Sequence record: MW349129.1
Length of the DNA stretch: 64,000 bases
Direction: 5' to 3' (one strand)
Under the pieces are notes generated by a model that searched no databases, was not told the DNA's origin, and saw only the letters and a program-made list of their open reading frames with translations. Position numbers and translations under genes: made by a program. Shown here piece by piece: positions 9,489 to 49,143 of the stretch. Position 1 is the stretch's first letter, and every line of letters begins with the position of its first letter.

Positions 9489-11654
9489 TTATTTATTAAT
9501 TCTACTGTATATATGGCAAAATGTTATGTCATCTAAATTTACTGTTTCATTTAATAATCTTTCTTTCCAGTTCTCTCCAAGATCATATATCATTTCTGAT
9601 AATAATTTCTCTGTGTAGTTCTGTAAAGGAACTAGTTTAGCATCATATTTACTGAATTTTTGTATATAGTTTTCATAACTTAAATCATCAGATACATATT
9701 TAATAGATTCAAATATATAAGGTTTAAATATCATATATCTATCAAAGTCCATATCATCATGAATCATTAATAATTTAGGTAAATAATAAGATTCAATAGG
9801 TACTTTAATTTCTAATCCTTGAATATTATTTTTATAATGAACTTCATATTTTAATTTTCTATCTTTCCAATCAAAATTATTAAGAGCATAATGTATAGGT
9901 TCTTCTTCAATATAATAATCAATTCCATCATTACTATATAATTGAACACTATCAAATGATCTAGGATCATTATCTGAATCAATATTATTTAACTCATTAT
10001 TTTCATTAGTCATTACATAATCTTCATATATAAAATAATAATTTTTAATATTAGGATATACTAAAGCTTTTTTATTAACGTCTGAATGTTTCTTAACTGT
10101 ATTTGAATTTATGATAAGTGAATCAAATAAGAAATTATTTTCATCAGGTGTAGTTATTTGTATATCATTTTCTTTTCTAAGATATACTTCATTGATATAC
10201 TCGTCTATATTCATTTCTGGAAATCTCTTATATAAACCTAATGTACATAAATTATTATGATCTTCATGAACTTTAGCAATATAATTTTTACCATTAATAT
10301 TTACTACAGCTTCTTCTTGTTTAAAATTCTTTATTTGATTGTTATTAAATTTTCTTCTAAATAATATTTTGAAATCATACATTCCAGATTCAGATAAAGA
10401 AACACTATTTTTAATAGTTCCTGTAGTTAAAGAAAACTTATCAGATAAACTACTAACTTCTTCTATATTTGTGACTCTATTATCTATTCTAAAGGTTTCT
10501 AAAGTTTTACCAGTTCCCTGATTGTAAGAATCATTATCTATATAGAAATCTTTAATAGGTACTATAGTTCTGGTTCCTACTTTGAAGTAATTTTCTTGTT
10601 TAGAATAGAAAGGATTTTTGGCTTCAGGAACTTCAACTTCTTCTAGTAATATAACGTTTATATCATTTTCTTTAGTAGAGAAGTTTTTATCATATTCAAA
10701 TTTAAATGTATGAGTTCCTTCCTCCAAGTATATTGGTGGCTCTTCAAAATATTCATCTTTATCATCATCATATTTTTCTAATATAGATCTAAACCATAAT
10801 AAACTTTTATTCGTAGGAGTTCTAAAATAACTTCCCACATTATCTATAAACACTTTATTCACTGTACCATTATTATAATGATTTCCAGCTTTAAATCTTA
10901 CTTCATAATGGGATGATTTAGGAATATTAATTTTCATTTCTAATATTCCATCTTCTATAGTCACATATCCTTTTCCTAAGAATCTGTCATAACCTGAATC
11001 TCTCTTATAAGCTCCATCAAATTCACTTTCTCTAGTTCTATAAACATCACCTAAATATGCATCATAGAATATTCTTCCATCTTCTACTAATCCATTATAT
11101 ATAATACCATCTATTAATTCAGATTCTTTTAATATTTTTTGATTAAACGCATAGTCTTTAGGATAATTATTATTATCTTTATAGACTGGTGGATAAGGTT
11201 CAATTTTCACCTCACTTTCTACCAGATTGTTAAAATTTAAATCTTCATACTCAATATTACCTATATAATTGGTATCATATATTCTTTCCATTTTACCTAA
11301 ATAATTATAATATATTGTAAATAGATCATACTTTAATTCACCAATTAATTCATAAGGTCTTTCTTCATATACTAAAACATCTTTAGTTAATTCATTTTGA
11401 TTTAATATAGGATTTTCAATCCCATATTCTTTTTTAATATATGAAGCTGATTCAAATAAATTAACCTCACCATCTTCTTTAAAAGATAATTTATTATATT
11501 CATCAGAATCAAATTCTATTTTTAATAATAATTTTTCTTTCTTTTTAGTTTTAGTTGTAATTAATGGTCTATTTTCATTATCTTTAATTTTAGTAATGAC
11601 AATTTCACCATTATTATTTTTATCAATTAATTCTTCTATTCTATAAAGCTTCAT
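9489..11654 (-). CDS. Probable virion/baseplate protein with CBM6/35-like beta-sandwich domains
   Basis: INIPKSSHYEVRFKAG..PIYLEEGTHTFKFEY and a second SLSESGMYDFKILF..YLRKENDIQI unit; last gene of the minus-strand tail operon. Confidence 0.5.
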   Translation of the reverse strand: MKLYRIEELIDKNNNGEIVITKIKDNENRPLITTKTKKKEKLLLKIEFDSDEYNKLSFKEDGEVNLFESASYIKKEYGIENPILNQNELTKDVLVYEERPYELIGELKYDLFTIYYNYLGKMERIYDTNYIGNIEYEDLNFNNLVESEVKIEPYPPVYKDNNNYPKDYAFNQKILKESELIDGIIYNGLVEDGRIFYDAYLGDVYRTRESEFDGAYKRDSGYDRFLGKGYVTIEDGILEMKINIPKSSHYEVRFKAGNHYNNGTVNKVFIDNVGSYFRTPTNKSLLWFRSILEKYDDDKDEYFEEPPIYLEEGTHTFKFEYDKNFSTKENDINVILLEEVEVPEAKNPFYSKQENYFKVGTRTIVPIKDFYIDNDSYNQGTGKTLETFRIDNRVTNIEEVSSLSDKFSLTTGTIKNSVSLSESGMYDFKILFRRKFNNNQIKNFKQEEAVVNINGKNYIAKVHEDHNNLCTLGLYKRFPEMNIDEYINEVYLRKENDIQITTPDENNFLFDSLIINSNTVKKHSDVNKKALVYPNIKNYYFIYEDYVMTNENNELNNIDSDNDPRSFDSVQLYSNDGIDYYIEEEPIHYALNNFDWKDRKLKYEVHYKNNIQGLEIKVPIESYYLPKLLMIHDDMDFDRYMIFKPYIFESIKYVSDDLSYENYIQKFSKYDAKLVPLQNYTEKLLSEMIYDLGENWKERLLNETVNLDDITFCHIYSRINK

Positions 11655-13267: not shown

Positions 13268-16200
13268 TTATTTACCTGAAAATACTGGTATAGCAGATCT
13301 CACGTCAATATTGAATTGATCTCCATAAGCTCTATTAATAGCTTCTTGAAGATCAGAATCTCCTTGTGAAGGTCCATTATTATTACCAGGGTTGATAATA
13401 ATAGTATCTCCATTTCCATTATTGCCACCTGTACCAGGATTATATGGATCATTAGGATTAACAATGACATTTCCATTATTTCCGTTATTACCATTGTTTC
13501 CATTTTGTCCGTTATTACTATTATTGCCATTTTGTCCGTTATTACCGTTGCTACCATTATTTCCATTTGCACCATTGATAATATCTGGATTATTTTGTAA
13601 ATTATCTTTAATGATTTTATCAATTTCTTTATTAATTTCTTTGATAATTACATTACCTTTAGAATCAACTAAGTCACCTTTATTATTGATAGTTGTGTTA
13701 TTAAAGATATTGTCACCTTTATTAATAGTAGTGTTATTACCTTTAAATGACATTTTTCTAAGTTGATCTAACATCTTAGCTGTATTCTTATCAATATTAC
13801 TTGTATGCTTAGTAATTTCATCTAAATCCATACGTTTTTGCTTATCAACTTTCATAGGTCCATTTTTGTAAGATACTGTAGAGTTATTATAATTATTAGT
13901 AATGTTATAAATATTTCTTACAGTATTATTATCACCTTGAATTGTTTGATGAGTAGTAGAATTGTTGGTTGTAGTTCCCGGTGAAGTATAGTTATTATTA
14001 ACTATGGTAGAATTAGTATTCCCCCCATTATTAATTACAGTACTTCCGCCAGAAGAACTTCCTGATCCTTGTTGTTGAGATTGACCTGGCATTGATGAAG
14101 ATGATCCATCTTGACCAGTTGCACCAGATTGACCATCAGAACCACTAGATCCTGATGAACCTGATGAACCAGAGTCTCCTGATTCACCATCTTCTCCATC
14201 AGATCCTGATGAACCTGATTCAGATTTCTTCTTACCAGCTTCAGATTTAAGCTTTTCTTGTTGTTCTTGATCTATTTTTTTGGCTTCTTCGTAATCAATA
14301 CCATATATTTGAGCGTAACGTTTCATTAAACGATCATTTAATGCTTCTTGTTCTTCTTCATCCATACGGTTATCGTCACGTCCAGTAATGGATCCGTACC
14401 AAGTACCATTTTTGAAACTATATTCTGAAGCTCCTGGTGAACCTCCTGATTCTGAACCTTCATCACTTGAGCTTCCGCTATCAGAACCTCCTTCACCATA
14501 TCTCATATATCCATCAATTCCCCATTTAGGGTTTTTATATTTATTAGCGCTGTTAATAACAACACCATCAACGCCATTAGCTTCTACTTGTTTACCTCCA
14601 CCAATGTACATTGTAACGTGTTCTATATTATCACATAAAATAATGTCACCTGGTTTAAGGTCTTTGGGACTTTTAGCTTTAATTTTTTCAAAAGGCGTAT
14701 CTCCATTCCAGAATGAATGAGTAGTGGCGTTTTTATCCATATCTAAACCAGCTTTTACATAAGCTCTAGCTATCAAACTAGAACAGTCAAAAGAATTAGC
14801 TCCTTGTCTGTTAGGTTGTGAATATTTTGCACCAACCTGTTTCTTAGCCCATGCAACAGCTTTATCAATTTTGGCTTTTTGACTTCCGCCACCGCCACCG
14901 CCTCTTTGTATAGGTGGATTGCCTTTAATTATTCCTGTTCTACGTGAGCTTTTGTTTTTTCCTGATGTAGATGAAACCATGTTAGAAAATTTACTAATAT
15001 CATTTGTATCAGCTATAACTGAACCGGCTCCACCTCCGCCAGCTCCTCCACCTTTTTTCTTAGTAGATTTTTTACCAGAACCACTGAATTGTTTGATAAA
15101 AGCATTACCAGAAGAAATACGTGACCCTAAAGCAGGAACACCAGCTCTTTCATATTTACTTACCCAAGAAGCAGCTGCTTGTTCTACTGTTTTAGTAGTT
15201 TTAAGGTGAGATAAGGCAGCACTTTCTGATCCACTTAATTCTTTCCATAAATAATCTAATTGTAAGTCTAAATCAGACCATTTTTTACCTTTTTCTTTAG
15301 CATATTTCATTAAACCTTGTCTACGAGTATTATCCCATTGAGCAATACCAATACCATAACCAGAAATAGCACTATTAGCTTTTGCTTCATCAAATTTGGC
15401 ATCTCCTTGAACACGATCAGCTTTCATTCCAGATTCATGTGCAAAGTTACCTAAAACACCAGCAGTTTGTTCATCAGAAAGTCCTTTATCTTTAAGGAAA
15501 TTCCAAATTTTCTCTGCACCTTCACCTTCAATTCCGGCTGCATCACTTCCTGAAGATGATGCTGAACTTGATGAAGATGATCCAGAGCCAGCCATAAAAC
15601 CAGCCATGATATCATTCATCATTCCTCCGAGCTTGTCAAACCAGTCTCCAATAGTGTTAACTACTTCTCCACCTGGTTCATTTATATCTAATTTAGATTT
15701 TTTCTTTTTCTTCTTACTTAGTAGAGAATAAAAAGGAGACATACGCATCATAGTTTCTGCTAATTTCTTAGGAGCCTTTTTAAGTTTACTCATAAGATTT
15801 TTAGGCATTAATTTATTCATTTGATGACCAATTCTACCCATTACTGATAATGGTGAATTTTTCATAGCTCCGTCTACATCTTTTTTAATGTCGTCTCTAG
15901 TTTTTCCTGCTGATTCTTCTACTTGTTTCTTAGCATCTTTGTTAGCTTTATCTGACATACCTTGCATTTCTGCTATTTCTTTTTTAGCTCTATCAGATGC
16001 TTCACTTTCAATACCTTCTTGATATGAACCTAATTCTTCTTTACTAGCTTCAGTCATTTCTTTACTCATATTTCCCATTTCTTCTTCATGACTAGAGAAT
16101 TTATCTTTTAACCATCCCCAACCAGATTTAATTAATCCAGTTCCTCCTTGAAGAAGCATAGAAGTCATACCAGTTAAATTACTTAAACCTTTACCGGCTA

Positions 16201-19159
16201 ATGCTAAAGGAGCCATCATTAACATGGAAGCTCCACCAACAACTTTCTTAATTAATCCACCAAAGCCGCTTGATTTTTCTTCCATAGCCATATCAGTTTG
16301 ATCTCCAAAACTTTTAGCCATACCAGTAGTTTTCTGAACCATATTCATACCTAAACCAAATGCTGGTTTTACAATTGATTTATATAATCCCACACCAGCC
16401 AATCCTAATAAAGGAGTAGAAGCTAATAATGGATTATCTTTAATAAATCCTCCTATAATTGAAGATTTATCTGTAGAACCATTCATTTTAGTATCAACTG
16501 AAGGATCAACTGCAAAGTTTTCTCCACCAGGTTGAGTTGAATCTAATTTTTCTTGTTCCTTTTTAGTTTTAGAAGGATGATCATTGAATCCAATAATACT
16601 ACCTAATGTTTTAATTGGATGTTTTAATGAGTCTATAGGATTAGTTATTGTTCTAATAATATCTGGACCAGCTAATGCCAATGATGCAATCTGTCCAATT
16701 CCAGGGATAGCATTTACTCCAACACGAGCACCTACTTTAGCTCCTGCTTTAAGTAATCCTTTACCTACAGCTTTTTTAGCACCTTTTCCAGCAGCCATTT
16801 TAGCAGCTCTAGCTTTAAGTTTTCCTTTAAGTTTACTACCTGCACCGGCCATTAAAGCACCGCCAGCAGCAAATTTACCAGTTAAAGAACCACCTGCACT
16901 AGTTATTTTACTACCTAATTTAGTATTAGATAATTTCCCTATTTTTTCTTTAGCAAAGTCTTTACCTTTGTTTTTATATTTATCAAATTTTTCTTTGACA
17001 TGTTTATTACTATCAATAAGATCTTGAGCATCTTCCATTCTATCTACAAGATCTTTATCATCTGAATTGTCAGAAGGTTTTGCTTGTCCATTTTCTAAAG
17101 TTTGTTCATTAGGAATAATAGTAGATCTATTATCATCATCTTTAATATTATCATTTCTTGTATTATCAGATTGTCTACTTTGATTTGGACTAGAAGATGT
17201 TGTAGAAGTATTTTTATTTAAAGTTTGTTCTCTAGGATCTATTTCTCTAGAAATATTATCATTAGGTTGATTTACATCACTAATAATACCACTTGAATTA
17301 CTATCACTAGAATTTCCGCTATATCTTCTCTCAGGTATTTTATTATTTATTCTAGATACAATTTCTTTAATTTCACTTATATCTTTATTAACGATATTAA
17401 AGTTAATATTATCGTATAATGCATCTTTGTTAGTGCTAAGAATACCACTTCTATTTTCATTATTTAATTTAGAAGTAATGTTTTTAGAAGTGCCTTTTCT
17501 TTCATTTTCATCATTAAGAGCATTTATAGAACTACTAGATAATTTTTTCTTAATATCTTTAGATTCTTTATTTAATTGCATTCTAGTTTTAGTTAAACTA
17601 GTTTTAGCTTCTTTATCATTAAATAATTTATCTAAAAGAATATTAAATGGATCATTCGGATCATTTGATTTAACTTGATCAAGTTCATTACTGTTATTAA
17701 TATTTTTAGAAATGATTTCTTTAATTTTAGATGTAGCTTTATTTTTATTATTTTCATTACTAAAAAGATCAATACCTATTTCAGAAGCTATATTTTCAAA
17801 TTCTTTAGTAAAACTAGATTCCTTAATAGTTTTACTAACTTTTTCTTCTATATCATCTTTAATTGACTTAGAAGTTTTAAATGAACCTGAATCATAGTCA
17901 TAATGAATTTCTTGTCCATCTTCTGAAGTTAAACCAACTATTTTAGATAAATAACCAGGTATAACTGTATTAAGTGTATTATGAGTTTCTACATCAAAAG
18001 CAACTTTTTGATGTCTATCTTTTCTGTTAGCAGTTGATATACCACCAGTTACACTATCAAATATTTTATCAATTAATTTACTTTTACCTGATTTAACATC
18101 TTCAAGAAGATCATCTCTTCTTTTATCTCTTTTTATTTGTTTATCTTTATCGTTTCCATCACTAAAAGGATTAAATTTTTTATTAGCAAATTTACCGACT
18201 GCTTTTTCTATGAAAGTATTTTCATTATTAAGAAAATCAAAAGCTTTACCTTTAGCTACATCAACTAATCCTAAACTTTTAATTCCTTGTTTTTTAGAAC
18301 CAATAACTTCTTTAAGCAATTCAGTTCCTTGTGTTTTAATAAAGTCTTTAGCTTTATCTTTAAATCCTTCTTCTTGAGATCCTTCCAATATATTTGATAA
18401 AGTTATATTAGATAGGAATAAATCTTCTAATGAATTACTATTTTTAATTTCAGATATATTTTTAATTTTAGTATTCTGTCTAATAGCATTACTAGTTTGA
18501 ATTAAACCATTTAAGTTCTGGAACATACTTTCTCTAATACTATCATTAGCTTCTCTCATTAAATTAAGATTATCAATCATAGAAGTAAATCCGGTAGTAT
18601 TTATTTGAGAAAGATTAGACACAGAAGAAGTTAATAAAGCTGTAGATTTAGCAGAAGAACCACCATCATTAATAACAGTTGTAGAAGATACTATTTTAGA
18701 TTTATTATTATCTTCTTCATCAAAGTCATCAAATTCAAAATCTCCATCTAAAGAATCATCCATTTCAGAGTCCATATCTGAAAAACTATCGTCAAAACCA
18801 AAATCTTCAAAATCACCACCGACATCCATACCCATGTTATTGAAGTCTTTTAATGATCCTTTATCTTGAATTGTTTCTCCAGTTTTAAAGGTATTTTTAG
18901 TAGATTCTAAAGCTTCTTTAGATAAATCTTTAGTAGATTCACTTATCTTTTGTAATTGTTTTTTCTTTTTATTCTTTAATTCTTTAACAGCTTTTAATGG
19001 ATTATTTTGATCCATAATGCGTTTCATGTCATTAGACTTCATGTTATTTAAATTTTTATTAAATTCATTATCTATATATTTTCTAGAAGATTTAGAGGAG
19101 GAGTTATTTCTAAACTCCTTCTCTATCTTGCTAGTACTAAATTTATTATCTTTAGCCAA
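13268..19159 (-). CDS. Giant tail (tape-measure-like) protein with phage tail lysozyme and NlpC/P60 domains
   Basis: KIWNFLKDKGLSDEQTAGVLGNFAHESG (about 15086-15518); FDCSSL..PGDII..HVTMYIG (about 14498-14876); A/G/K-rich tape-measure-like region; TTG start. Confidence 0.8.
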   Translation of the reverse strand: MAKDNKFSTSKIEKEFRNNSSSKSSRKYIDNEFNKNLNNMKSNDMKRIMDQNNPLKAVKELKNKKKKQLQKISESTKDLSKEALESTKNTFKTGETIQDKGSLKDFNNMGMDVGGDFEDFGFDDSFSDMDSEMDDSLDGDFEFDDFDEEDNNKSKIVSSTTVINDGGSSAKSTALLTSSVSNLSQINTTGFTSMIDNLNLMREANDSIRESMFQNLNGLIQTSNAIRQNTKIKNISEIKNSNSLEDLFLSNITLSNILEGSQEEGFKDKAKDFIKTQGTELLKEVIGSKKQGIKSLGLVDVAKGKAFDFLNNENTFIEKAVGKFANKKFNPFSDGNDKDKQIKRDKRRDDLLEDVKSGKSKLIDKIFDSVTGGISTANRKDRHQKVAFDVETHNTLNTVIPGYLSKIVGLTSEDGQEIHYDYDSGSFKTSKSIKDDIEEKVSKTIKESSFTKEFENIASEIGIDLFSNENNKNKATSKIKEIISKNINNSNELDQVKSNDPNDPFNILLDKLFNDKEAKTSLTKTRMQLNKESKDIKKKLSSSSINALNDENERKGTSKNITSKLNNENRSGILSTNKDALYDNINFNIVNKDISEIKEIVSRINNKIPERRYSGNSSDSNSSGIISDVNQPNDNISREIDPREQTLNKNTSTTSSSPNQSRQSDNTRNDNIKDDDNRSTIIPNEQTLENGQAKPSDNSDDKDLVDRMEDAQDLIDSNKHVKEKFDKYKNKGKDFAKEKIGKLSNTKLGSKITSAGGSLTGKFAAGGALMAGAGSKLKGKLKARAAKMAAGKGAKKAVGKGLLKAGAKVGARVGVNAIPGIGQIASLALAGPDIIRTITNPIDSLKHPIKTLGSIIGFNDHPSKTKKEQEKLDSTQPGGENFAVDPSVDTKMNGSTDKSSIIGGFIKDNPLLASTPLLGLAGVGLYKSIVKPAFGLGMNMVQKTTGMAKSFGDQTDMAMEEKSSGFGGLIKKVVGGASMLMMAPLALAGKGLSNLTGMTSMLLQGGTGLIKSGWGWLKDKFSSHEEEMGNMSKEMTEASKEELGSYQEGIESEASDRAKKEIAEMQGMSDKANKDAKKQVEESAGKTRDDIKKDVDGAMKNSPLSVMGRIGHQMNKLMPKNLMSKLKKAPKKLAETMMRMSPFYSLLSKKKKKKSKLDINEPGGEVVNTIGDWFDKLGGMMNDIMAGFMAGSGSSSSSSASSSGSDAAGIEGEGAEKIWNFLKDKGLSDEQTAGVLGNFAHESGMKADRVQGDAKFDEAKANSAISGYGIGIAQWDNTRRQGLMKYAKEKGKKWSDLDLQLDYLWKELSGSESAALSHLKTTKTVEQAAASWVSKYERAGVPALGSRISSGNAFIKQFSGSGKKSTKKKGGGAGGGGAGSVIADTNDISKFSNMVSSTSGKNKSSRRTGIIKGNPPIQRGGGGGGSQKAKIDKAVAWAKKQVGAKYSQPNRQGANSFDCSSLIARAYVKAGLDMDKNATTHSFWNGDTPFEKIKAKSPKDLKPGDIILCDNIEHVTMYIGGGKQVEANGVDGVVINSANKYKNPKWGIDGYMRYGEGGSDSGSSSDEGSESGGSPGASEYSFKNGTWYGSITGRDDNRMDEEEQEALNDRLMKRYAQIYGIDYEEAKKIDQEQQEKLKSEAGKKKSESGSSGSDGEDGESGDSGSSGSSGSSGSDGQSGATGQDGSSSSMPGQSQQQGSGSSSGGSTVINNGGNTNSTIVNNNYTSPGTTTNNSTTHQTIQGDNNTVRNIYNITNNYNNSTVSYKNGPMKVDKQKRMDLDEITKHTSNIDKNTAKMLDQLRKMSFKGNNTTINKGDNIFNNTTINNKGDLVDSKGNVIIKEINKEIDKIIKDNLQNNPDIINGANGNNGSNGNNGQNGNNSNNGQNGNNGNNGNNGNVIVNPNDPYNPGTGGNNGNGDTIIINPGNNNGPSQGDSDLQEAINRAYGDQFNIDVRSAIPVFSGK
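14217..14437. repeat. 221-bp direct repeat, copy 1
   Basis: Colinear with 19697-19917; 22 mismatches counted by hand (about 90% identity). Confidence 0.95.
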
Positions 19160-19182: not shown

Positions 19183-22100
19183 CTATTTCAATTCTTCTAA
19201 TAAACGGTCTAATTCTTTAGTAGATGCTAATGTATTTCTATCTATATTAGCTAACATTCTTACTAAATCATCTGAATACCATAATTTTTCATAATCATAA
19301 GTATAACCAGAGTTACCATTTTCAATTTTAGAATTTTTATAATTGTTTACAATTTTATTATAATGGTTAGTTACTCGGTTTTTACCTTTTATAAATTCTT
19401 TATTCACATTTTCATTATTAATGACATTACTTTGTCCATTTTGATAGTTGTTATTAACTGTTTGAGTATTTTTACTACCTTGATTATTGACATTGTTATT
19501 ACCTTTATTAATATTAGAGAAACCACTATTATTTAATGTTGGTAATTGGAATACCGGAGGATTTCCGATATTCTTATTATTAGTTATTTGAGAACTTGAT
19601 TCTTGTGGTTTAGATGGCGATGCTGAAGAATCAGAACTATCTGAAGATTCTTTATCTCCAGAATCTTCACTTCCAGATCCTGATGAACCTGATCCGGATT
19701 CAGATTTCTTCTTACCGGCTTCAGATTTTTTCTTTTCTTGTTGTTCTTGATCGATCTTTTTAGCTTCTTCATAGTCAATACCATATATCTGAGCATAACG
19801 TTTCATTAATCTATCATTTAATTCTTCTTGCTCGTCTTCATCCATACGATTATCATCACGACCAGTTATTGAACCGTACCAAGTACCATTTTTGAAACTA
19901 TATTCTGAAGCTCCTGGACCTGATTCACTATTTCCTTCTTGCTCGTCTTCATCACTTTTAGAAGCAGAAGAACTAGATCCTCCTCCGCCAATAGTCTCTT
20001 TAATTGTACTTGCTAAAGCTTTCTTACCTTTACTATTCGGATGAACACCTAAACCATCATTTTCAATCATATCAGAACTGGCTTTACTATTCCAGTCTAT
20101 TACTTTTGAATCTGAACTTTCAATAGCTTTGTTAGTTGCTTCAATAATATCAGAAATATCAGATCCTTTTCTCTTTTCAGGATCTACATACGTATTAACA
20201 AAGTATACATCTGCTTTGTCATACATATCTTCTATTTCTTTAACATTACCTGTAGTTAATCCTCCATTAGTACCTAATTGTACTATAATTGCATTTTTAT
20301 CTTTATTGTATTTCTTTTTGTTGGATTCTAATACATTTTTACCATTAGGCGAAGGACCTCCACTTGAATAAGTTCTTGAAGGAACTGCATTAATTTGAAT
20401 TTTACTAACTGATTTTCTTATTTCAGAAGCAGCTCCTGCACCTATGGAGTCACCTACCATAAATACTTTATTGTAGGATTTACCTCCACCGCCTCCACCA
20501 GTTACTGTTTTAGCTATTTTTCTAATGGCTTCAGGAGTATTACTGAATGGAAATCTATCTTTAACAAAATTATCAACTCGTTTTTTAATCTTCTTAATAT
20601 TGTATATATCTGAATTGTAAATCTTAGTTTTTTCTTTTTCTGCCTTTTCTTCAGTTTTCTTCTGATTATTTTCTAATTTATTTAAAAGAGCTCTATCATT
20701 TCTTACTTCTTTAGCTCTTTGTCTTTTAGCTTCTTTGACTTCTTGTGATTTATAACCACCGTCTACCATTTTTACAGTAGGATCAAATGCAGCTCCACCT
20801 TTTTTACCTTTTTTAGATTTTCCAGCTTTACTACCTTTGTCTTCATCACTACCGCCTTTAGAACCTTTTAAAGGAGCTTTAATCCAAGGTGATGGATCTA
20901 CAGAGTTTTTCTCCATAGCCCAACCGCCTGGTTTACCTTTATTTATTTGGAAGTGAAGGTGACCTGAACCAGCAGTATTAGCACCAGTGTTACCTGAGAT
21001 TGCTATAACTTGTCCAATTTTAACTTTATCGCCCTTTTTAACTAATTGTTTAGATAAATGCATATACGTACTATAGATGTTACCAGGTGATTTAACTTGA
21101 ACAACATTACCTCCACCCGGATCGGTGTCTGATCTAATAACTGTACCTTCTACCATACATTTAACTTTTTGACCTGGAAGCATACCTATATCAATACCAT
21201 AGTGCTTTCCTCCGTTAAATGATAAACCAGAGTAGTTACCATATGGTTGCCAAATCGCAGCACTTGGTATTTTTTTCATCCAAGCACCAACTGTACCATC
21301 TGGTATTTGATTAATAGAACCAGGTACAATTTTCTTAGTATTCATATCTACTTCGCCAGCTTCACCTGAAACTTCAGGTTCACCGTCTCCACCAGAATCG
21401 CCACCACTAGAATTTTTCATTTTAGACATTGCAACAACCATTTCTTCCATTTTAACTAAGAAACGACTGAACCAGTCTCCAATTTCACCTTTACCATATT
21501 TAGAGAAATCAATTCCACCCTTAGCTATTTGATACAAACTACCTAGAGGTGTACTCATGAACATATCTTTTTGAATATTTTCTTCAGCCTTCGGTCCTGA
21601 TTTCATTTTATTATCGGTAACTGTTTTAAACATATCTCCGCCAACTTTAGCTAGTGGGAACATAGGAGATGTTCTAAACATTAGTTTAGAAGTACTTAAT
21701 ATTAATCTACCTAGACCTGTTTCATCTTCAGTATGTTTTTCTTCTTTACTTTTAGCTTCATCCTCTATTTTATCACCGGGATGCTCTCCAATTCCAAAGA
21801 AGCTACCTAATGTTTTAATTGGATGTTTTAATGATTCTATAGGATGTTTAATAGTCTTAATAATATCAGGAGCCCACAATGCTGCACCAATTACTGGTCC
21901 AACGAATGGTATGAATGGTAATGCTGTTTTCAATCCTGCTTTTAATGCAAATTTTCCTCCAGCTTTCGCTGCACCTTTACCAAATAATTTATTTTTAGCT
22001 TTACCTATAGCACCAAAAGCTTTTCCTCCAAGTTTCTTAGCTCCGCCAAATAAACCTTTACCGATAGATTTAACTCTGTTAAAGCCATTAGAAGCAAATT

Positions 22101-25100
22101 TACTTAATCCCTTAGTAGCAGCTGAAGCATTCTTTTTATTAAATATTTTAGATATACCACTTTTAGCTACGTTCCCTATAGTTTTACCAACACTTAATCC
22201 TTTTTTGACTAATCCTGCACCTTTACCGATAACCATTTTGCCTAAAGCTTTAACAGTAGGTATTTTACCTTTAGCAAATTTCCCAATACCTTTAAATACG
22301 TTACCTATCTTTTTAGGAACACCTGTAATACCTTTAAATAATTTTCCTAATCCAAATTTTCCAGCTATATTTTTAATTCCGCCACCTATTTTACCTAACA
22401 TTCCAGGCATACCAGTAAAGAATTTACCTATTCCACCCGGTAATAATTTAGATAATAATTTAGGTCCAAATTTAGCAGCTAAGAACCCTCCAGCACCTAG
22501 CATAGCAGCGTTACCTAAGAACCCTCCAGCAGATGCTAAGAATCCTTTCTTACCAGGTTCTAGGTCTTTTTTACCATTTCTACCTTTCATTAATGAACCT
22601 AATACAGCTGCAGAAGTTCCAGCAAATAAAACTGGTCCCATTTTACTAAAATCAAGCATACCATTCATCATTTTTTTAGCACCAATGGATTTTTCAGCTT
22701 CTCCACCTTTTCCAAAGTTTATATTACCTCTAATGGATTCAGCAATTTCTTTTTTATTGGAACCTGTTATTTTAGACATAACATCTTCCCCAGATTTTCC
22801 TGCATCGGCAGTTGAAAGGCCTTGTTTCATTCTTTCTAAAGCTCCAGCATCTTGAGAATCTTCCATATCTTTTTTAATAGTTGGATCATTGCCAAAAGCA
22901 GTTTTAACTAAATCGATTATTGTACTCTTAGCTTTCTTTTCTTTTTCCTCTCTAGTTAAATCATCTATTGTTTTGCTTGGTTCTTTAGTGTAAGTATCTT
23001 TATTAGCCTCATTATTATTAATTGATAATTTATTTAAACCAGGAATATTCTTCATTAAATCCATTAATGGATTATTATCTATAATACTAGATTGATTTAT
23101 ATTCTGATAAGGATATTCATCATCTTGATCTGGTTGAGTATTTTCTTGAGTTGAATTAACTCTACTAGATGCAGAAGAAACCATATCTTTAATAGCACTT
23201 GTAGGGTTTTCTTTGTATTCTTTAGCTTTATTAACTGCATTAGAAAGACTATTTAATTTATCCATTACAGAAGCATGAGCTTCATTACTTCCATTATTTC
23301 CACTTAGAATAGGGAAATTTTTACCTTTATCTATGATATTATTGATCGTATTAACTTTATTATTAATAAATTCTTTATTATTATTAATATTATCATTACT
23401 GAAATTATTGTCTAATTTTCTTTCTATTTCTAAGAAAATATTTTTAATTTCTTCTAAATCACTATTTTCCCAGTTAATATTACCAAAATCTTTAATCTGA
23501 TTAATATTATCATTATTATTAGATCTAGAATAAGTCGAATTAGATTTATTTAAACCTTCTATTTCAGTAAATGCCATTATTCTTGAATTATCTTTTTTAT
23601 CAAGTGTTTTTGAAATAGATTTCTTAATATTGAATAAATCAGTATTAAATTTAGCTGAATTCTTTTCAAACACTTCAGATAATGACTCAGTATTAACATT
23701 TATATTTTTCTGATTAACTATTTCTTTAAGTTTAGAAGTTTTTTGGATAGGTTTGTCTATTTTAGTTAATTCAGCTAAAACTTCTTTAGTTCTTTCTTCA
23801 TCATTATCTAATTTAGATAATAATTCTTTACCTAAATAAGTATCTTTAAAATTAAATAAAGAATCTGATTTAATCTTATCCAAGTCTTTTTTCTTAGCCG
23901 AACCTCGATTTTCCCAAACGCCTTTTCGGTAATTATAGATACTACCTAATTCAGCATTATCTGCTAATCCACCTGAACGACCTTCTTTTTTGGCTATCAA
24001 ATTACCTTGAAGTCTAGATAAGAAGTCTGGTATAACTTTATTAATAGACGTATGAGATTCCATATCAAATTGAACAGGAGTATCTTTTTTACGTTTATTT
24101 TTTAGAGAAATACCGCCTTTACCATCACCTAATAACTCTTCTTTAAATTGATCTAATCTACCTGAAAGAGCATTTCCTAAATTAGATATATACTTATTAT
24201 CATTGCCAGTTAATCTTTCTAAACCTTTAGTAAGTTTACTATCTTCATCAAGATTTCTATTAATAAGCATAGAACCTATATTTTGTGGATCAAATCTTTT
24301 ATTCAATCTATTAAATATATTTTTATTATCGCCTTCAGGATCATAACCACCAATATCACCGTAAAGAAGTTTATTAAATGCAATTTTAGCTCCTTGAGTT
24401 GCAGCAAATTCAATAGGATTTTTAGCTACACCCATCAGCATTGATTTAAGTTGGTCTCCGGACATCATACCCATTAATAAATTTTCAGGATTAGTTTTCT
24501 CATCCAAATATTTTAATAAACTAACATTTCCATTTAATATGGAATGTAATTTATTTTGTTTATCTCTTTTGGTATTTTCTTCCATTATCGTATTCTGGTA
24601 TATACCATCTTGTATTGTACTTAAATTTGATAAAGCTGAATCTACGAGACTATTAGTTGCTTGCATTGATAAAGAATAATTATTCAGTGCAATATTTGTT
24701 CCAACAAATCCTCTTTGATTTATCTCAGCTAAATTATTCATTGCTACTAGAGGTGAATTTGTTATTCTAGATTTCTTTTTATCTGATAAACTAACAATTT
24801 CAGATTTAGTTCCATCAGGATTATCGATATATTCTGTTACTGATTCATATTCAGGTTTTTCATTAGATAATTTTTCATTACTACTTGAAAAAAGATCATT
24901 TTCATTAGATTTATTTTTTAGTGTTTTTAATAAATCATTAGTAGAACCTTTAACTTCAGAAAATTTTTTTAATCTTCTTTCATCATTGTTGAATAATTTT
25001 AAACCTGAATCTCCCACTATAGCATCTAATGATGGATTAGATTTTATAAACGCATTAAAAAGAATACGACCAGTATTTTTAGAAGCATTTTTAATGACAG

Positions 25101-25161
25101 TTGATTTATTATTATTTTCTAATTGTCTAATATTCTTTTTATTTCTATTATTTTTAGCCAA
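19183..25161 (-). CDS. Giant tail (tape-measure-like) protein with M23 peptidase and OatA-like SGNH hydrolase domains
   Basis: HYGID..YMHLS..GNTG..HLHF (about 20880-21250); VGDSI..QLGTNG..VIDW..DGLGVHP (about 19988-20475); paralogous to 13268-19159. Confidence 0.8.
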   Translation of the reverse strand: MAKNNRNKKNIRQLENNNKSTVIKNASKNTGRILFNAFIKSNPSLDAIVGDSGLKLFNNDERRLKKFSEVKGSTNDLLKTLKNKSNENDLFSSSNEKLSNEKPEYESVTEYIDNPDGTKSEIVSLSDKKKSRITNSPLVAMNNLAEINQRGFVGTNIALNNYSLSMQATNSLVDSALSNLSTIQDGIYQNTIMEENTKRDKQNKLHSILNGNVSLLKYLDEKTNPENLLMGMMSGDQLKSMLMGVAKNPIEFAATQGAKIAFNKLLYGDIGGYDPEGDNKNIFNRLNKRFDPQNIGSMLINRNLDEDSKLTKGLERLTGNDNKYISNLGNALSGRLDQFKEELLGDGKGGISLKNKRKKDTPVQFDMESHTSINKVIPDFLSRLQGNLIAKKEGRSGGLADNAELGSIYNYRKGVWENRGSAKKKDLDKIKSDSLFNFKDTYLGKELLSKLDNDEERTKEVLAELTKIDKPIQKTSKLKEIVNQKNINVNTESLSEVFEKNSAKFNTDLFNIKKSISKTLDKKDNSRIMAFTEIEGLNKSNSTYSRSNNNDNINQIKDFGNINWENSDLEEIKNIFLEIERKLDNNFSNDNINNNKEFINNKVNTINNIIDKGKNFPILSGNNGSNEAHASVMDKLNSLSNAVNKAKEYKENPTSAIKDMVSSASSRVNSTQENTQPDQDDEYPYQNINQSSIIDNNPLMDLMKNIPGLNKLSINNNEANKDTYTKEPSKTIDDLTREEKEKKAKSTIIDLVKTAFGNDPTIKKDMEDSQDAGALERMKQGLSTADAGKSGEDVMSKITGSNKKEIAESIRGNINFGKGGEAEKSIGAKKMMNGMLDFSKMGPVLFAGTSAAVLGSLMKGRNGKKDLEPGKKGFLASAGGFLGNAAMLGAGGFLAAKFGPKLLSKLLPGGIGKFFTGMPGMLGKIGGGIKNIAGKFGLGKLFKGITGVPKKIGNVFKGIGKFAKGKIPTVKALGKMVIGKGAGLVKKGLSVGKTIGNVAKSGISKIFNKKNASAATKGLSKFASNGFNRVKSIGKGLFGGAKKLGGKAFGAIGKAKNKLFGKGAAKAGGKFALKAGLKTALPFIPFVGPVIGAALWAPDIIKTIKHPIESLKHPIKTLGSFFGIGEHPGDKIEDEAKSKEEKHTEDETGLGRLILSTSKLMFRTSPMFPLAKVGGDMFKTVTDNKMKSGPKAEENIQKDMFMSTPLGSLYQIAKGGIDFSKYGKGEIGDWFSRFLVKMEEMVVAMSKMKNSSGGDSGGDGEPEVSGEAGEVDMNTKKIVPGSINQIPDGTVGAWMKKIPSAAIWQPYGNYSGLSFNGGKHYGIDIGMLPGQKVKCMVEGTVIRSDTDPGGGNVVQVKSPGNIYSTYMHLSKQLVKKGDKVKIGQVIAISGNTGANTAGSGHLHFQINKGKPGGWAMEKNSVDPSPWIKAPLKGSKGGSDEDKGSKAGKSKKGKKGGAAFDPTVKMVDGGYKSQEVKEAKRQRAKEVRNDRALLNKLENNQKKTEEKAEKEKTKIYNSDIYNIKKIKKRVDNFVKDRFPFSNTPEAIRKIAKTVTGGGGGGKSYNKVFMVGDSIGAGAASEIRKSVSKIQINAVPSRTYSSGGPSPNGKNVLESNKKKYNKDKNAIIVQLGTNGGLTTGNVKEIEDMYDKADVYFVNTYVDPEKRKGSDISDIIEATNKAIESSDSKVIDWNSKASSDMIENDGLGVHPNSKGKKALASTIKETIGGGGSSSSASKSDEDEQEGNSESGPGASEYSFKNGTWYGSITGRDDNRMDEDEQEELNDRLMKRYAQIYGIDYEEAKKIDQEQQEKKKSEAGKKKSESGSGSSGSGSEDSGDKESSDSSDSSASPSKPQESSSQITNNKNIGNPPVFQLPTLNNSGFSNINKGNNNVNNQGSKNTQTVNNNYQNGQSNVINNENVNKEFIKGKNRVTNHYNKIVNNYKNSKIENGNSGYTYDYEKLWYSDDLVRMLANIDRNTLASTKELDRLLEELK
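19697..19917. repeat. 221-bp direct repeat, copy 2
   Basis: Offset of 5480 bp from copy 1, no indels. Confidence 0.95.
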
Positions 25162-25312: not shown

Positions 25313-25966
25313 TTATTTATTCTTGACTACATCTTGTATCTTATTCAATACACTATCTAAATTTTTAGTATAAACTAAATTAGTAAATAATACATCTAAT
25401 AAAAATACTATAGTTTTATGTGTAATGTAAAATAAATTATTAACTATTTTATCTTGTTCTTCTTCGCTAATTTCTTCTTTATCTTGATGATATTTTCTAT
25501 TAGGTAATGAACGTCTACTTAATCCCATATATTCAACTAAATATTCATTTAATTTCGTTTTAATATCATCAAGTCTATCATAATCACTAATACTCTTATC
25601 GTTAGCTAAAAGAAGAGTTTTGTTATAATCGATATTACTTGTTTGAAGAAATTTATTGTCCATATATTTACTTAATAATGTTGAATTGATAGATATTAAG
25701 TAAAGAATAATGTCTAATAATTCTTTTGATGCATTATTAATATATTCAAACTTCTGAGACTGATTGTATTCAGGATTATTAGTAATTTGATTTATTTCAT
25801 AATTAAATTCATGAATTTCTTCAACTATTTGAGGTATGAATCTATCTACCATTTGATGTAATTCCTCATTACCAAAATCGTAACGAGAAATTACATTTAC
25901 ATGATTTATATACATAGCACTTATATCTAATTCAATAGATTCTCTTTTCTTATAAAAATGTTTCAT
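25313..25966 (-). CDS. Putative all-alpha NTP pyrophosphohydrolase (MazG/dUTPase-like)
   Basis: IVEEIHEF (ExxE) and SKELLDII (ExxD); start moved to ATG 25966 behind a GGAGG SD. Confidence 0.45.
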   Translation of the reverse strand: MKHFYKKRESIELDISAMYINHVNVISRYDFGNEELHQMVDRFIPQIVEEIHEFNYEINQITNNPEYNQSQKFEYINNASKELLDIILYLISINSTLLSKYMDNKFLQTSNIDYNKTLLLANDKSISDYDRLDDIKTKLNEYLVEYMGLSRRSLPNRKYHQDKEEISEEEQDKIVNNLFYITHKTIVFLLDVLFTNLVYTKNLDSVLNKIQDVVKNK

Positions 25967-25995
25967 TGACAATTCCTCCATGTTTTTAATTGGTC

Positions 25996-26916
25996 TTATC
26001 TAAAACGTTTTTTGTATTCTTCTTCATATTTAGCATTGATATCTGAAACTTTAATATCTTTACCATCATCTGTTTTAAAGTTATCTTTATCAATTTCTTC
26101 ACCTTTAATTACTTCTTTATCTTCATTTTCTACTTTAGCTACCATAGCAATATGAGGTGGTACAAATGATGCTTGTTTAATTGTTTCCATTTTAGCATTA
26201 TGAATACGACCTTTAATTAATTTACGAGAGAAATGTACATTTTTCATAGTTATTGTTTTACCTTTAACTAATGCACTTTCTCTAAGTTCATCAATTTTAT
26301 TAATAATATCACTTAATTCTTTTTTAGAATATCTATTATCTTCTAGATTTGCTACTAAGTCATTAATAAGTTCTTCTTTAGTATAAGATTTCTCACTGAA
26401 TTTTTTAACATTTTTCTTTTTATTAGTCATTTTCTTTTTACCATCCTTTTGATTTGATTTAGTTTTTGTACTTTGTTTTTTCTCTTTTAATACTGGATTC
26501 TTAACTTCTTCTTTAGTCTCTTCTTGCTTAGTTTCTACTTTATCTTCTTCTTCTTGTTTCGTTTCTTTTTGCTTAATTTCTTTTGCCTTTTCTGGATTTA
26601 TACCTGAAGCTGTCATAGTTACTTTATCATAGGAACTTTCTGTTGGAATATCTTTAAGATTAATTTCAACATCTTTAAGTTCATCTGAATTGATGAAAAT
26701 TTCTTTTTTATCATAATTAATCTTAATAACATTATCATCTTCAGGAATTAAAACTAAATTCTTTCTGTCATATTTCTCTGGAATAGTTTCGATATCAAAT
26801 GTAATTGTATCTCCTTCATATCCTTGTTCTTCTGATAATTTAATCTTAGCTGACTCTAATACAGTTAAATCCTCTTTTTCTTTTGTAACTTTCTTTCTTG
26901 TAATTGCCATATCCAA
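25996..26916 (-). CDS. Protein with a C-terminal HU/IHF-like DNA-binding domain
   Basis: TKEELINDLV..YSKKELSDII..ALVKGKTITM..FSRKLIKGR pattern; charged N-terminal half. Confidence 0.55.
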   Translation of the reverse strand: MDMAITRKKVTKEKEDLTVLESAKIKLSEEQGYEGDTITFDIETIPEKYDRKNLVLIPEDDNVIKINYDKKEIFINSDELKDVEINLKDIPTESSYDKVTMTASGINPEKAKEIKQKETKQEEEDKVETKQEETKEEVKNPVLKEKKQSTKTKSNQKDGKKKMTNKKKNVKKFSEKSYTKEELINDLVANLEDNRYSKKELSDIINKIDELRESALVKGKTITMKNVHFSRKLIKGRIHNAKMETIKQASFVPPHIAMVAKVENEDKEVIKGEEIDKDNFKTDDGKDIKVSDINAKYEEEYKKRFR

Positions 26917-34791: not shown

Positions 34792-36729
34792 GTGAATTTG
34801 ATAATGAATGATAATAGAACAATTAAAGTAATTAGAAAAGAAATATTAGATGAGGTACAGGAATCAATTGTAAATGATAGACAATTAGATAAAAAGAAAT
34901 TAACGAAGCTTGGAGAAGAATTAATTGAAAATAGTATTTTTGTTTTGTATACTTCTGATGTTGATATTTATGGAGTAATGTTAATGACTGTAGAAAAGAT
35001 CATTGATATTGAAATTCCAGAACCAACTTTCTCAGTATTTGATGAAGAAAAAGGTTATAAGATTGGTATTAATCCAGTATTATTAGCTACTATGGTTGAT
35101 AAAGATGAAGAAATAGTTTCTATGTTCCTGCATGAAGTTATACATGTAGCTCATGGACATTTAATTGAATTTAGAATGTTAAGAAATAAAGAAGACTCTC
35201 AATTAAAAATGTTAAGTCATTTGGGAATGGATTTATCAGTATTTGAAATTGAAGAGGACTTCCAATTAGGTAAACGTGAAGCTAATACAAGTAAGAAAGT
35301 TTTACCTGAAATTGCACCTAATGTAGATAAGATTGAAAAATATATTCAAGATAGATTTAATAAAACAGATTTTAAATTAAATCATAATGATGCTTCTCAT
35401 TATTATATTAAACAATTAGTAGATATCTACAAAGAGAATAATGAAGAAGATATGTTTGATTCTATGGGTGAATCTATGCAAAATATGATTCAAGAGGCTT
35501 CAGAAAAACAAAATGAACGTGATGAAGATTCATTGAATGAAGAAAACGAAATGTTGAAAGGTATGTTAGAAGATTTAAAAGATATTGAAGATAAAAATGA
35601 TTTATCTAGTAAATTAGAAGATAACAAACTAGAAGAAAATAAAGTTGATGATTTTGAAAATAAAGCTCAAGAGTATATCAATAAATTAGATGAAATGAAT
35701 CAAAATGATGAAGATAACAGTAATGATACTCAAAATCAAAAAGATATAGAAGAGAAAATGAATGATTTACTAGATTTAATGAGAAATAATACTTCAGATA
35801 ATAAATTTAATAATAAAGATAATAGTGATTTATCTGATAAAATACAAGAAATGAAATCAGATATACTAAATCAAATGATTCAGAATAATATGCAACAAGG
35901 TTCTCAAGGTATGCAAGGTGAAGATGGTGGAATGCAAGGAGGACAAAATGTATCTGATATGGGAAGTAATATGACTATGTCATCTTCTTTAGATGGAAAT
36001 TCTAAACATGCAGATAAGTTTGATTCTAATCCTCTTGAAGGAGACGCTACAGAGGAAAGAATGAAAGACCAATTGTACGACTTATTAGAAAGTGCTAGTA
36101 GTAATAGTCGTGGTGACACACCTGCTCATATTAAAGAACAAATTGAAATTCTAAAACGTAAACCTAAGATTAAATGGCAAGATTATCTTAAAGCTAAAGT
36201 AGGTAAAAAACGTTCTTCTAGTACGAAAACTATTCTAAGAAGAAATAGAAGACAACCTTATCGTAGTGATGTACGTGGAACTTTACCTGGTAGAAAATTA
36301 GGTAAAGTATTTGCAGCTATCGATACTTCAGGTTCAATGGGTAGAAATGAGATTGAAGAAATTATTGCTGAATTGTATTATATTAGTAGTGATATGAAAA
36401 TTGATTTAGTTTTATTATTCTTCTCAACTGATGTTGAAGAAGTAGTTGAAGTAACTAGACCAAATCAATTTAATGATTATGTAATGGGTCGTGGTGGAAC
36501 TTACTTCAGTTCTGTATTTAACTTCTTAAATGAAACTGATAACAAACGTAAATATTCAGTATCAAAAGATGATACATTATTATTCTTCTCAGATGGGTTT
36601 GGAGAACCTGAAGTAGAATACGGTGTATTAACTGATGTTGTTTGGGTTATCACTGAAGATGAAAATAATCTTTCAGTCAGAGATCCAAAAGGTAAAGTAT
36701 TGAAATTAGAAGTAGACAATAATAGATAA
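34792..36729 (+). CDS. vWA-domain protein with N-terminal HExxH metallopeptidase-like domain (DUF2201-like)
   Basis: LHEVIHVAHGH; AIDTSGSM MIDAS; GRGGT; FFSDGFG; the true start may be a few codons downstream. Confidence 0.82.
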   Translation: MNLIMNDNRTIKVIRKEILDEVQESIVNDRQLDKKKLTKLGEELIENSIFVLYTSDVDIYGVMLMTVEKIIDIEIPEPTFSVFDEEKGYKIGINPVLLATMVDKDEEIVSMFLHEVIHVAHGHLIEFRMLRNKEDSQLKMLSHLGMDLSVFEIEEDFQLGKREANTSKKVLPEIAPNVDKIEKYIQDRFNKTDFKLNHNDASHYYIKQLVDIYKENNEEDMFDSMGESMQNMIQEASEKQNERDEDSLNEENEMLKGMLEDLKDIEDKNDLSSKLEDNKLEENKVDDFENKAQEYINKLDEMNQNDEDNSNDTQNQKDIEEKMNDLLDLMRNNTSDNKFNNKDNSDLSDKIQEMKSDILNQMIQNNMQQGSQGMQGEDGGMQGGQNVSDMGSNMTMSSSLDGNSKHADKFDSNPLEGDATEERMKDQLYDLLESASSNSRGDTPAHIKEQIEILKRKPKIKWQDYLKAKVGKKRSSSTKTILRRNRRQPYRSDVRGTLPGRKLGKVFAAIDTSGSMGRNEIEEIIAELYYISSDMKIDLVLLFFSTDVEEVVEVTRPNQFNDYVMGRGGTYFSSVFNFLNETDNKRKYSVSKDDTLLFFSDGFGEPEVEYGVLTDVVWVITEDENNLSVRDPKGKVLKLEVDNNR

Positions 36730-43968: not shown

Positions 43969-44154
43969 ATTATCAAGTTAATGCTCCGTTGTATAGTGAT
44001 ATACAGAAAGACAAATTTATTAATTGCTGGGATAATTCATTAATTAAATCAGCATCTTAAGAAATTAAGTTCAACGACTAAATATAAATATACTTAATAT
44101 AAAGTATAAGATATAGTCTAATCTTTGTTAAATTAATAAAGACTAATAAAAATG
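43969..44154 (+). ncRNA. ORF-less group I intron (186 nt)
   Basis: AATTGCTGG (P), AATCAGCA (Q), GTTCAACGACTA (R), AAGATATAGTCT (S); P1 GAGU/GCUC with U.G pair; terminal G; splicing restores MKNE-F-LLDKQ..KKKTYAS. Confidence 0.9.
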
Positions 44155-49077: not shown

Positions 49078-49103
49078 AAAAAATTTCTTTCCATTCCCCA
49101 TGA

Positions 49104-49115: not shown

Positions 49116-49143
49116 TTAATAAATAGATATTGGAGAGATAAAA

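Follow-up and report, generated by a model that had tools for sequence, protein, structure and literature searches.

An OatA-type SGNH domain in a putative tape measure protein of Staphylococcus jumbo phages is a candidate peptidoglycan de-O-acetylase

A giant tail protein with an SGNH module

The subject of this analysis is a 64,000-nucleotide stretch of sequence record MW349129.1 (hereafter, the window; G+C content ~25%), the minus strand of which encodes a 1992-amino acid (aa) putative tail tape measure protein containing an SGNH module that resembles the catalytic domain of OatA. The O-acetylation of N-acetylmuramic acid (MurNAc) by OatA is the main cause of lysozyme resistance in pathogenic staphylococci. 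Across the module region, DNA identity is 99.4% to Staphylococcus phage Madawaska and 97-98% to phages DC4, PALS_2, MarsHill, and S6, all of which are jumbo myoviruses of ~265 kb; the window belongs to an S6/Madawaska-type Staphylococcus jumbo phage. The gene for the 1992-aa protein has tail sheath/virion protein genes on one side and a baseplate wedge gene on the other, and it is adjoined by a second giant open reading frame (ORF) encoding a paralogous protein annotated as 'tail lysin' (Table 1).

An earlier note on this DNA, made from the letters and translations alone, had pointed out six OatA-like peptides in the 1992-aa tail protein. All six are present and in order (aa 1566-1574, 1625-1633, 1649-1655, 1687-1695, 1702-1709, and 1712-1717), and they span window positions 20011-20466 in the minus-strand ORF. 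The interval that the note gave for the domain, 19988-20475, is a near-exact match to the module as delimited here, but it came with no strand; a plus-strand reading of this interval has stops throughout, and the feature belongs to the minus strand. Runs of at least four Gly residues occur only twice in the 1992-aa protein, both flanking the SGNH module. Because these two poly-Gly runs bracket the motif region, we set the limits of the module at aa 1561-1724. When the whole protein is compared with Pfam, a Peptidase_M23 domain alone is found, and no AT3 domain.

That the module resides in a tail protein is supported by the Madawaska counterpart (CPT_Madawaska_087), which is annotated 'tape measure protein'. 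The more specific role as tape measure is putative and is assigned from annotation, position, and size. At 0.15 nm per residue, a rule of thumb of our own, the ~1250-1300 residues that precede the enzymatic cassette described below would span ~190 nm, compared with the measured PALS2 tail of 201 +/- 29 nm. The PHROG 'tape measure' match to this protein covers the M23 part only, and the two paralogous giant proteins are both candidates for the role.

The module is an OatA-branch SGNH domain

Compared with all PDB sequences by phmmer, the module matches 6wn9 and 6vjp only (E 3.8e-10 and 1.7e-9), identified via Foldseek as the C-terminal catalytic domain of Staphylococcus aureus OatA (SaOatA-C). 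The alignment extends over 158 residues and superposes the Block I nucleophile, Gly-Thr-Asn, Asp-Trp, and the Block V His on OatA, bearing out residue by residue the GDS / LGTNG / DW / D..H layout that the earlier note had described. A profile of the module and 37 relatives matches SaOatA-C at E 2.7e-53 and the corresponding domain of Streptococcus pneumoniae (SpOatA-C) at E 1e-23. The AF2 model of the module (pLDDT 92.8, pTM 0.89) has five strands alternating with helices. Its best Foldseek matches are again the S. aureus OatA C-domains (E 3e-9, TM 0.79-0.82 on target), followed by S. pneumoniae OatA-C and PatB proteins and then by generic SGNH esterases, and all PDB matches at E<=1e-3 are SGNH/GDSL-fold proteins. 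The module is certainly an SGNH domain of the OatA branch (OatA-C/PatB). Ape1, the other enzyme that the earlier note had proposed for a fold comparison, proves distant: chains 4k3u, 8gkd, and 8gld match at Foldseek E 2e-3 to 8e-3 (TM 0.26-0.28 on target), and neither phmmer nor the family profile gives a sequence match to Ape1 in the PDB. Ape1 is not a close homologue of the module.

Putative active site residues can be assigned from these comparisons. In Block I, Ser1572 lies within Gly-Asp-Ser and is aligned to the OatA nucleophile. Block II reads Pro1594-Ser-Arg, with Ser1595 at the position of the oxyanion Gly; SpOatA likewise has a Ser at Block II, and its own oxyanion hole consists of two residues (PMC5697884). 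The G(T/V)N of Block III is present as Gly-Thr-Asn, and its Asn1632 occupies a column that is invariant in three module alignments. In Block V, Asp1702 precedes His1707 by five residues, as opposed to the canonical Asp-x-x-His.

The domain has no public annotation because its Pfam scores fall below threshold. Lipase_GDSL matches the module with E 0.004 and 17.8 bits against a gathering cutoff of 23.6, and DUF459 with 15.7 bits against 27.2; relatives of the module match Lipase_GDSL_2, also only below cutoff, and an NCBIfam scan returned nothing meaningful. An SGNH annotation is absent from all phage records inspected, and the papers describing DC4, MarsHill, and SA1 do not mention the domain.

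A subfamily with an expanded Block V and wall-degrading partners

An exhaustive HMMER search of 1.84 billion representative proteins returned 192 matches at E<=1e-3; the subfamily counts given here rest on the aligned domain parts of the best 150 of these. Other searches were less productive: a word-indexed protein search recovered the DC4 orthologue only with the whole 1992-aa query and nothing with a 401-aa context query, and no relatives came from scanning IMG/VR with patterns of the phage alignment or a genome collection with those of the single domain.

Of the 150 best relatives, 141 retain Ser, Asn, and His. The canonical spacing, with Asp at His-3, is found in 72, and 57 have the Block V form of the window module, which is two residues longer. 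Most members of this second group have Asp at His-5, and the rest have the same Gly-Leu-Gly-Val-His loop. Because 57 of the 150 relatives form a group with the same longer Block V, the expanded Asp-His spacing is a hallmark of a subfamily and not a lesion. The earlier note had called this spacing atypical; the difference of five versus three residues is real, but it is a conserved trait and no anomaly.

The two groups differ in their fusion partners. A Pfam scan of each member of the expanded-Block-V group (n=57) detects the phage tail lysozyme domain PF18013 in 38, M23 in 7, CHAP in 6, and Peptidase_C39_2 in 4, as well as GH3, glucosaminidase, and VanY in a few members; AT3 (PF01757) is detected in none of the 57. 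In the group with the DxxH form (n=70 scanned), AT3 is present in 18, which are true OatA-type proteins, PF18013 in 14, and M23 in 7. AT3 is seen solely among DxxH-type matches. Judging from these fusions, the expanded-Block-V subfamily seems to have lost the link to a membrane acetyl donor and to have been built into cell-wall-breaching proteins.

A per-protein cross-tabulation, in which the classes are our own, adds two residue positions to this distinction. Block II has Val/Ile in 15 of 20 AT3-fused matches but in only 11 of 64 lysozyme-fused ones; the residue four positions after the nucleophile (Ser+4) is Asp in 8 of the 20 AT3-fused matches and Gly in 47 of the 64 lysozyme-fused ones. 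The window module has Pro at Block II (Pro-Ser-Arg) and Gly at Ser+4, and Val/Ile at Block II is as rare as 4/57 in the expanded group. Both positions have been linked to the preference for transfer or hydrolysis in OatA. Its Block II is (V/I)(G/S)(R/V), in which Val/Ile is invariant, and variants of this Val in SpOatA (Val460) show a five- to ten-fold decrease in transferase activity and a slight increase in esterase activity (PMC5697884). A conserved Asp in Block I of SaOatA-C retains a water molecule that limits the access of solvent (PMC9487903); this residue is probably the Ser+4 Asp of chain 6wn9.

Non-phage relatives in secretion and conjugation loci

The nearest homologues outside the staphylococcal phages are SGNH-lysozyme(-M23/CHAP) proteins linked to type IV secretion systems (T4SS) of Saccharibacteria/Patescibacteria, such as QQS65290.1, and giant proteins of conjugative elements (the 30 best matches have 31-44% identity, with E down to 1e-21). 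The four expanded-type proteins whose surroundings we examined, all on metagenome contigs, are found in one conserved type of chromosomal cluster, with the order TrbL, PrgI, TraC-like, VirB4-type ATPase, a ~1000-aa VanY-like protein, the SGNH-lysozyme protein, and recF-dnaN-dnaA. One of the four has the same length and cluster as QQS65290.1, from a Candidatus Saccharibacteria bacterium. The Saccharibacterial SGNH-lysozyme gene is directly beside recF-dnaN-dnaA and so borders the region of the replication origin.

A scan of species-representative genomes, confirmed by tblastn with the phage module, identified 50 loci, nearly all in Saccharibacteria/Patescibacteria with a few in Actinomycetes, a list that is biased to the former as the scan patterns were Saccharibacteria-derived. 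In one Saccharibacterium strain, peptidase and lysozyme homologues encoded directly downstream of virB4 are essential for epibiotic growth; the SGNH part is unmentioned in that study (PMC12102498). The two nearest non-phage matches (1518 and 1662 aa; E 1e-21 and 1e-19) are encoded beside a MobL relaxase and a T4SS coupling protein. Because its relatives are located in Saccharibacterial T4SS clusters and in conjugative elements, the module family travels with machines that cross Gram-positive-type walls.

The T4SS-linked and conjugative relatives share with the phage module the expanded Block V, a variable Block II, Gly at Ser+4, and an association with PF18013 and M23, and like the phage protein they are part of a machine crossing a Gram-positive-type wall. 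In contrast to the phage protein, the T4SS-linked relatives are cellular or plasmid genes with all domains on one polypeptide of 420-780 aa, the SGNH part of which is uncharacterised; the phage instead encodes its lysozyme in the paralog and has the module near the C-terminus of the 1992-aa protein.

A recent capture of the host oatA gene can also be rejected. In the structural alignments, the module is only 23-25% identical to the solved OatA domains, AT3-fused relatives appear in the library search only from E ~1e-9, and the non-phage relatives that outrank them sit in T4SS or conjugative loci where examined.

A proposed accessory role in wall breaching

The module most likely works as a hydrolase, a prediction based on the lack of a donor domain, the two-position non-transferase signature, the wall-degrading fusion partners, and the lack of an extracellular acetyl donor; with no such donor outside the cell, a transferase would presumably be left without a substrate. 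By analogy, the substrate would most likely be the 6-O-acetyl group of MurNAc, because the solved relatives bind that site and the partners include a muramidase. Together these considerations lead us to propose that the module is a MurNAc de-O-acetylase with an accessory function, working in concert with M23 in its own protein and with the lysozyme in the paralog; we consider this proposal about as likely to prove right as wrong.

The following series of events can be envisaged. Tail contraction would present the C-terminal cassette to the wall, where Ser1572 would be activated by His1707 and Asp1702 and, with Asn1632 contributing to the oxyanion hole, would move the 6-O-acetyl group of MurNAc to water. 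The glycan bared in this way would be exposed to the PF18013 lysozyme domain of the paralog, and the M23 domain of the same protein would cut peptide cross-links. The module would act at the tail tip, alongside the M23, lysozyme, and NlpC/P60 domains.

Degenerate modules and cassette exchange in sister phages

Several observations weigh against a de-O-acetylase, and the first group of these comes from sister phages. In the phage collection, tblastn finds the module in ten records only, all of them staphylococcal jumbo phages. It is 100% identical in five records, which constitute the window's clade, and 37-42% identical in the other five (Machias, PB50, AH12, SA1, and LY01). In the four of the latter that we aligned (Machias, AH12, SA1, and LY01), the nucleophilic Ser is replaced by Glu/Asp, the His by Met/Thr, and the Block III Thr by a hydrophobic residue; PB50 is grouped with this degenerate type by its equal tblastn match. 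The degenerate Machias-type module is still predicted to fold as an SGNH domain (pLDDT 84.4). The lysozyme paralog is likewise retained, with a PF18013 domain in all five phage lineages, and the lysozyme domains of SA1 and LY01 are 83-85% identical to that of the window. The two His-containing metal motifs of M23 are also kept in all five lineages.

The degenerate module is 19-30% identical to outgroup proteins, compared with 24-38% for the window module and the same proteins. Because it is so much farther from the outgroup than the window type, the Machias-type module is a derived, inactivated form. Catalysis by the module is therefore dispensable, and the module has a non-catalytic role. Since sister phages with the inactivated module keep the lysozyme paralog, any esterase activity in the window's clade is accessory and not required.

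The second group of observations concerns the module itself. Its nearest solved relatives are transferases with weak esterase activity, whereas Ape1, a true peptidoglycan esterase, is only a distant structural match (Foldseek E 2e-3). The Block V Asp is off the canonical position, and approximately 10 of the 57 members lack any Asp within seven residues of the His; in these, the acid may be dispensable or supplied from elsewhere. Within the window's clade, dN/dS is uninformative about selection on the module, as there are two synonymous differences only. Finally, neither giant protein is among those named from the DC4 virion in the accessible part of a liquid chromatography-mass spectrometry report, a shallow data set in which 26 peptides were assigned to 15 proteins.

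These results bear directly on the earlier note, which had interpreted the domain as a de-O-acetylase that unlocks the wall for a lysozyme domain on the adjacent paralog. The lysozyme domain is indeed there (PF18013; Table 1). The de-O-acetylase reading itself gains from the 0/57 count for AT3, the 38/57 count for PF18013, and a Block II and Ser+4 signature that points away from transfer, and it loses from the sister phages whose module lacks Ser and His. As a general requirement, however, unlocking of the wall fails: Machias, AH12, SA1, and LY01 lack Ser and His yet keep the lysozyme paralog. Overall, the earlier interpretation is partly supported.

The sister phages also reveal a mosaic structure of the 1992-aa protein. 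The LY01 protein and the one encoded in the window share 91% identity over aa 1-1250 and 86% after aa 1751. Across aa 1251-1750, their identity falls to 22-56%; inside this cassette LY01 is Machias-like, with an M23 domain 89% identical to that of Machias. Because LY01 is window-like on both sides and Machias-like inside, the M23 and SGNH domains are exchanged as a block by recombination between phage lineages. In the window's clade, 0 of the 166 columns of the SGNH part vary in amino acid and 2 differ only synonymously; the corresponding counts for the 820 columns of the N-terminal part are 40 and 88. The near-invariance of the cassette, which extends to synonymous sites, suggests a recent common origin.

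Alternative functions of the module

The degenerate modules raise the possibility that the module is a non-catalytic wall-binding domain or spacer, holding the tail-tip cassette on peptidoglycan by means of its OatA-like surface for glycan binding, and that the intact Ser and His of the window type are an ancestral leftover. Four aligned sister phages, and PB50 by its tblastn match, keep a foldable module without these residues, and in the phages with the degenerate module the M23 and lysozyme domains are intact. MurNAc O-acetyl groups aid the adsorption of another staphylococcal phage (PMC4876445), which makes a module that recognises O-acetyl-peptidoglycan plausible. Yet where catalysis has been abandoned, the Ser, the His, and the Block III Thr have all changed, and it is this degenerate type that is farther from the outgroup; the full catalytic set of the window type looks selected, and Ser-Asn-His is kept in 141/150 relatives. 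We regard a purely non-catalytic role in the window's clade as unlikely, though not to be set aside lightly.

Alternatively, the module could be an active esterase that acts on a different envelope ester, such as the D-alanyl groups of teichoic acid, O-acetyl groups of a capsule or other polysaccharide, or a lipid. In favour of such a substrate, capsules and O-antigens are common targets of deacetylation by SGNH domains in phage tail proteins, and in BFVD the structural matches that come next are generic SGNH tail proteins of phages. The tail protein Tal of phage phi11 also contains an uncharacterised SGNH domain (PMC4876445). However, the closest solved structures (OatA and PatB) act on the peptidoglycan glycan, lipases and capsule esterases being more distant, and the fusion partners of the subfamily are all peptidoglycan hydrolases; moreover, a domain in a tape measure protein would presumably reach the wall only after the capsule has been passed. 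Another ester is, in our estimation, rather improbable as the substrate.

The nearest characterised relatives are all transferases, and the module could in principle be an O-acetyltransferase that acetylates the host wall, for example, shielding the infected cell from other phages or from host lysozyme. There is no AT3/MBOAT donor partner in the 1992-aa protein or in the 57-member subfamily, the Block II Val/Ile and the Block I Asp that are tied to transfer are missing, and the fusion partners degrade the wall and do not build it; such an activity is very unlikely. Lastly, a chance resemblance of motifs in a low-complexity giant protein, which the Pfam scores below gathering thresholds might suggest, is ruled out by the matches to solved OatA domains (E values from 1e-10 to 1e-53), by the confidence of the SGNH model, and by the 192 homologues in the protein library.

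Extending the de-O-acetylase proposal from the phage module to its relatives, it is conceivable that the entire expanded-Block-V subfamily consists of dedicated peptidoglycan de-O-acetylases of wall-piercing machines (phage tails, monoderm conjugation, and the Saccharibacterial T4SS), which would strip OatA-type armour before the muramidase acts and would have arisen from the branch of transferases that install this armour. The swap of intact and degenerate cassettes would then be an adaptation to differences in host wall O-acetylation. We offer this extension tentatively, as an idea that will more probably fail than hold.

Comparison with known systems

The OatA C-domain (S. aureus 6VJP/6WN9; S. 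pneumoniae 5UFY; the 'SGNH-AT3' family) is the best match to the module in both sequence and structure. They share the fold, a size of ~160 aa, the order of Blocks I/II/III/V, and the aligned Ser, Asn, and His, and probably also a ligand position at MurNAc C6. Unlike OatA, the module has no AT3 membrane domain, has Pro in place of the invariant Val/Ile of Block II and Gly in place of the SaOatA Asp at Ser+4, contains a Block V that is two residues longer, and is proposed to remove acetyl groups, not to add them. Ape1 of Neisseria and Campylobacter catalyzes the reaction proposed here and has an SGNH fold with a Ser-His-Asp triad. It differs from the module in structure (Foldseek rank 28-37, E 2e-3 to 4e-3, TM 0.46-0.49 on query), in its extra N-terminal lobe, in being about twice the size (chains of 349-365 residues), and in its location in the Gram-negative periplasm.

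Wall-degrading domains in tail-tip proteins follow the same principle in T5 Pb2, TM4 Tmp, the phiIPLA35 TMP muramidase, and phi29 gp13 (PMC6116005), as does phi11 Gp44 (Tal), a tail protein with an SGNH domain that resembles a CE2 carbohydrate esterase (PMC4876445). In a profile search, the lysozyme part of the module's relatives matches phi29 gp13. None of these five proteins contains an OatA-type SGNH domain, and a review of virion-associated lysins mentions no peptidoglycan de-O-acetylase (PMC6116005). In the literature searched, we found no description of an enzyme that removes the MurNAc O-acetyl group from Gram-positive walls, or of a phage-borne one. Lytic domains in tail proteins and SGNH esterases in phages are already known, but we found no earlier description, in the searchable literature, of an OatA-type SGNH domain in a tape measure protein or of the lysozyme-fused T4SS subfamily.

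If the de-O-acetylase proposal is true, a mobile element counters a modification of the wall with the very fold that installs it, and the unannotated N-terminal part of the Saccharibacterial T4SS-linked lysozyme proteins acquires a function. The natural occurrence of intact and degenerate versions in otherwise near-identical tail proteins is a ready-made comparison for studies of structure and distribution.

The paralog and other features of the window

Table 1. Positions of the SGNH module, its partner domains, and other features in the window
Feature	Position	Strand	Basis or remark
ORF, 1992 aa, putative tail tape measure protein with SGNH module	19183..25161	minus	ORF list and translation; TTG start
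OatA-C-like SGNH module, aa 1561-1724	19990..20478	minus	Motif positions, PDB sequence matches, AF2 model, Foldseek
Poly-Gly linker, N-terminal module edge, aa 1555-1560	20482..20499	minus	Run of at least four Gly
Poly-Gly linker, C-terminal module edge, aa 1725-1728	19978..19989	minus	Gly run invariant across five aligned phages
Peptidase_M23 domain, aa 1319-1409	20935..21207	minus	Pfam PF01551, E 6.6e-23
Mosaic enzymatic cassette (M23, linker, SGNH), aa ~1251-1750	19912..21411	minus	Identity break, LY01 versus window
Single strongly hydrophobic segment, aa 1077-1101, after Gly/Lys-rich region	21859..21933	minus	Kyte-Doolittle scan
71-aa module, aa 1749-1819 of 1992-aa protein	19705..19917	minus	96% identity to paralog copy at 14225-14437 (minus)
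Paralogous ORF, 1963 aa, 'tail lysin'	13268..19159	minus	Adjoins 1992-aa ORF; ORF list, annotation
PF18013 phage tail lysozyme domain of paralog, aa 1215-1358	15086..15517	minus	Pfam E 1.6e-35; proposed partner enzyme
NlpC/P60 peptidase domain of paralog, aa 1454-1540	14540..14800	minus	Pfam E 4.9e-11
HNH/homing endonuclease ORFs	34792-36729 and 49144-50280	plus	Beside polymerase fragments
DNA polymerase fragment	42735-44060		Next to HNH/homing endonuclease ORFs
RNA polymerase beta subunit fragment	47725-49119		Next to HNH/homing endonuclease ORFs

By BLASTP, the two giant proteins have in common their N-terminal architecture, the hydrophobic segment together with the motif that follows it, and the 71-aa module. 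Apart from this last module they are at most 25-44% identical, and its far higher identity suggests gene conversion or a shared docking/assembly element. The paralog also contains a collagen-like Gly-X-Y stretch (14099-14218, minus strand; Pfam Collagen E 2.5e-6), and an Asn/Gly-rich repeat region is found near its C-terminus, in the last ~100 codons.

Genes in the neighbourhood of the two giant genes encode ribonucleotide reductase, a 1050-aa tail sheath, virion structural proteins, a RecD/Dda-like helicase, and the baseplate wedge protein. Three flanking ORFs on the minus strand (9489-11654, 25313-25981, and 25996-26916, encoding 721, 222, and 306 aa) have zero PHROG matches. The 222-aa and 306-aa ORFs, which are upstream of the giant genes, are conserved throughout the sister phages and may encode tail assembly chaperones.

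Farther along the window, split DNA polymerase and RNA polymerase genes are found with HNH endonucleases (Table 1); split polymerase genes are known from AR9-like jumbo phages, and the arrangement in the window fits. Positions 51309-61784 of the plus strand contain approximately 15 head-to-tail ORFs of 160-270 aa each, several of which are paralogous pairs, such as 51309-51791 and 52519-53010 (67% identity) and 60193-60972 and 60987-61784 (33% identity); the one ORF of this array that was tested has no PHROG function. The virion protein gene that lies downstream of the tail lysin in Machias (16266-18510) is annotated as two joined pieces around a transposase (TnpB/CasX-like) ORF, and its counterpart in the window is an unbroken ORF of 483 aa.

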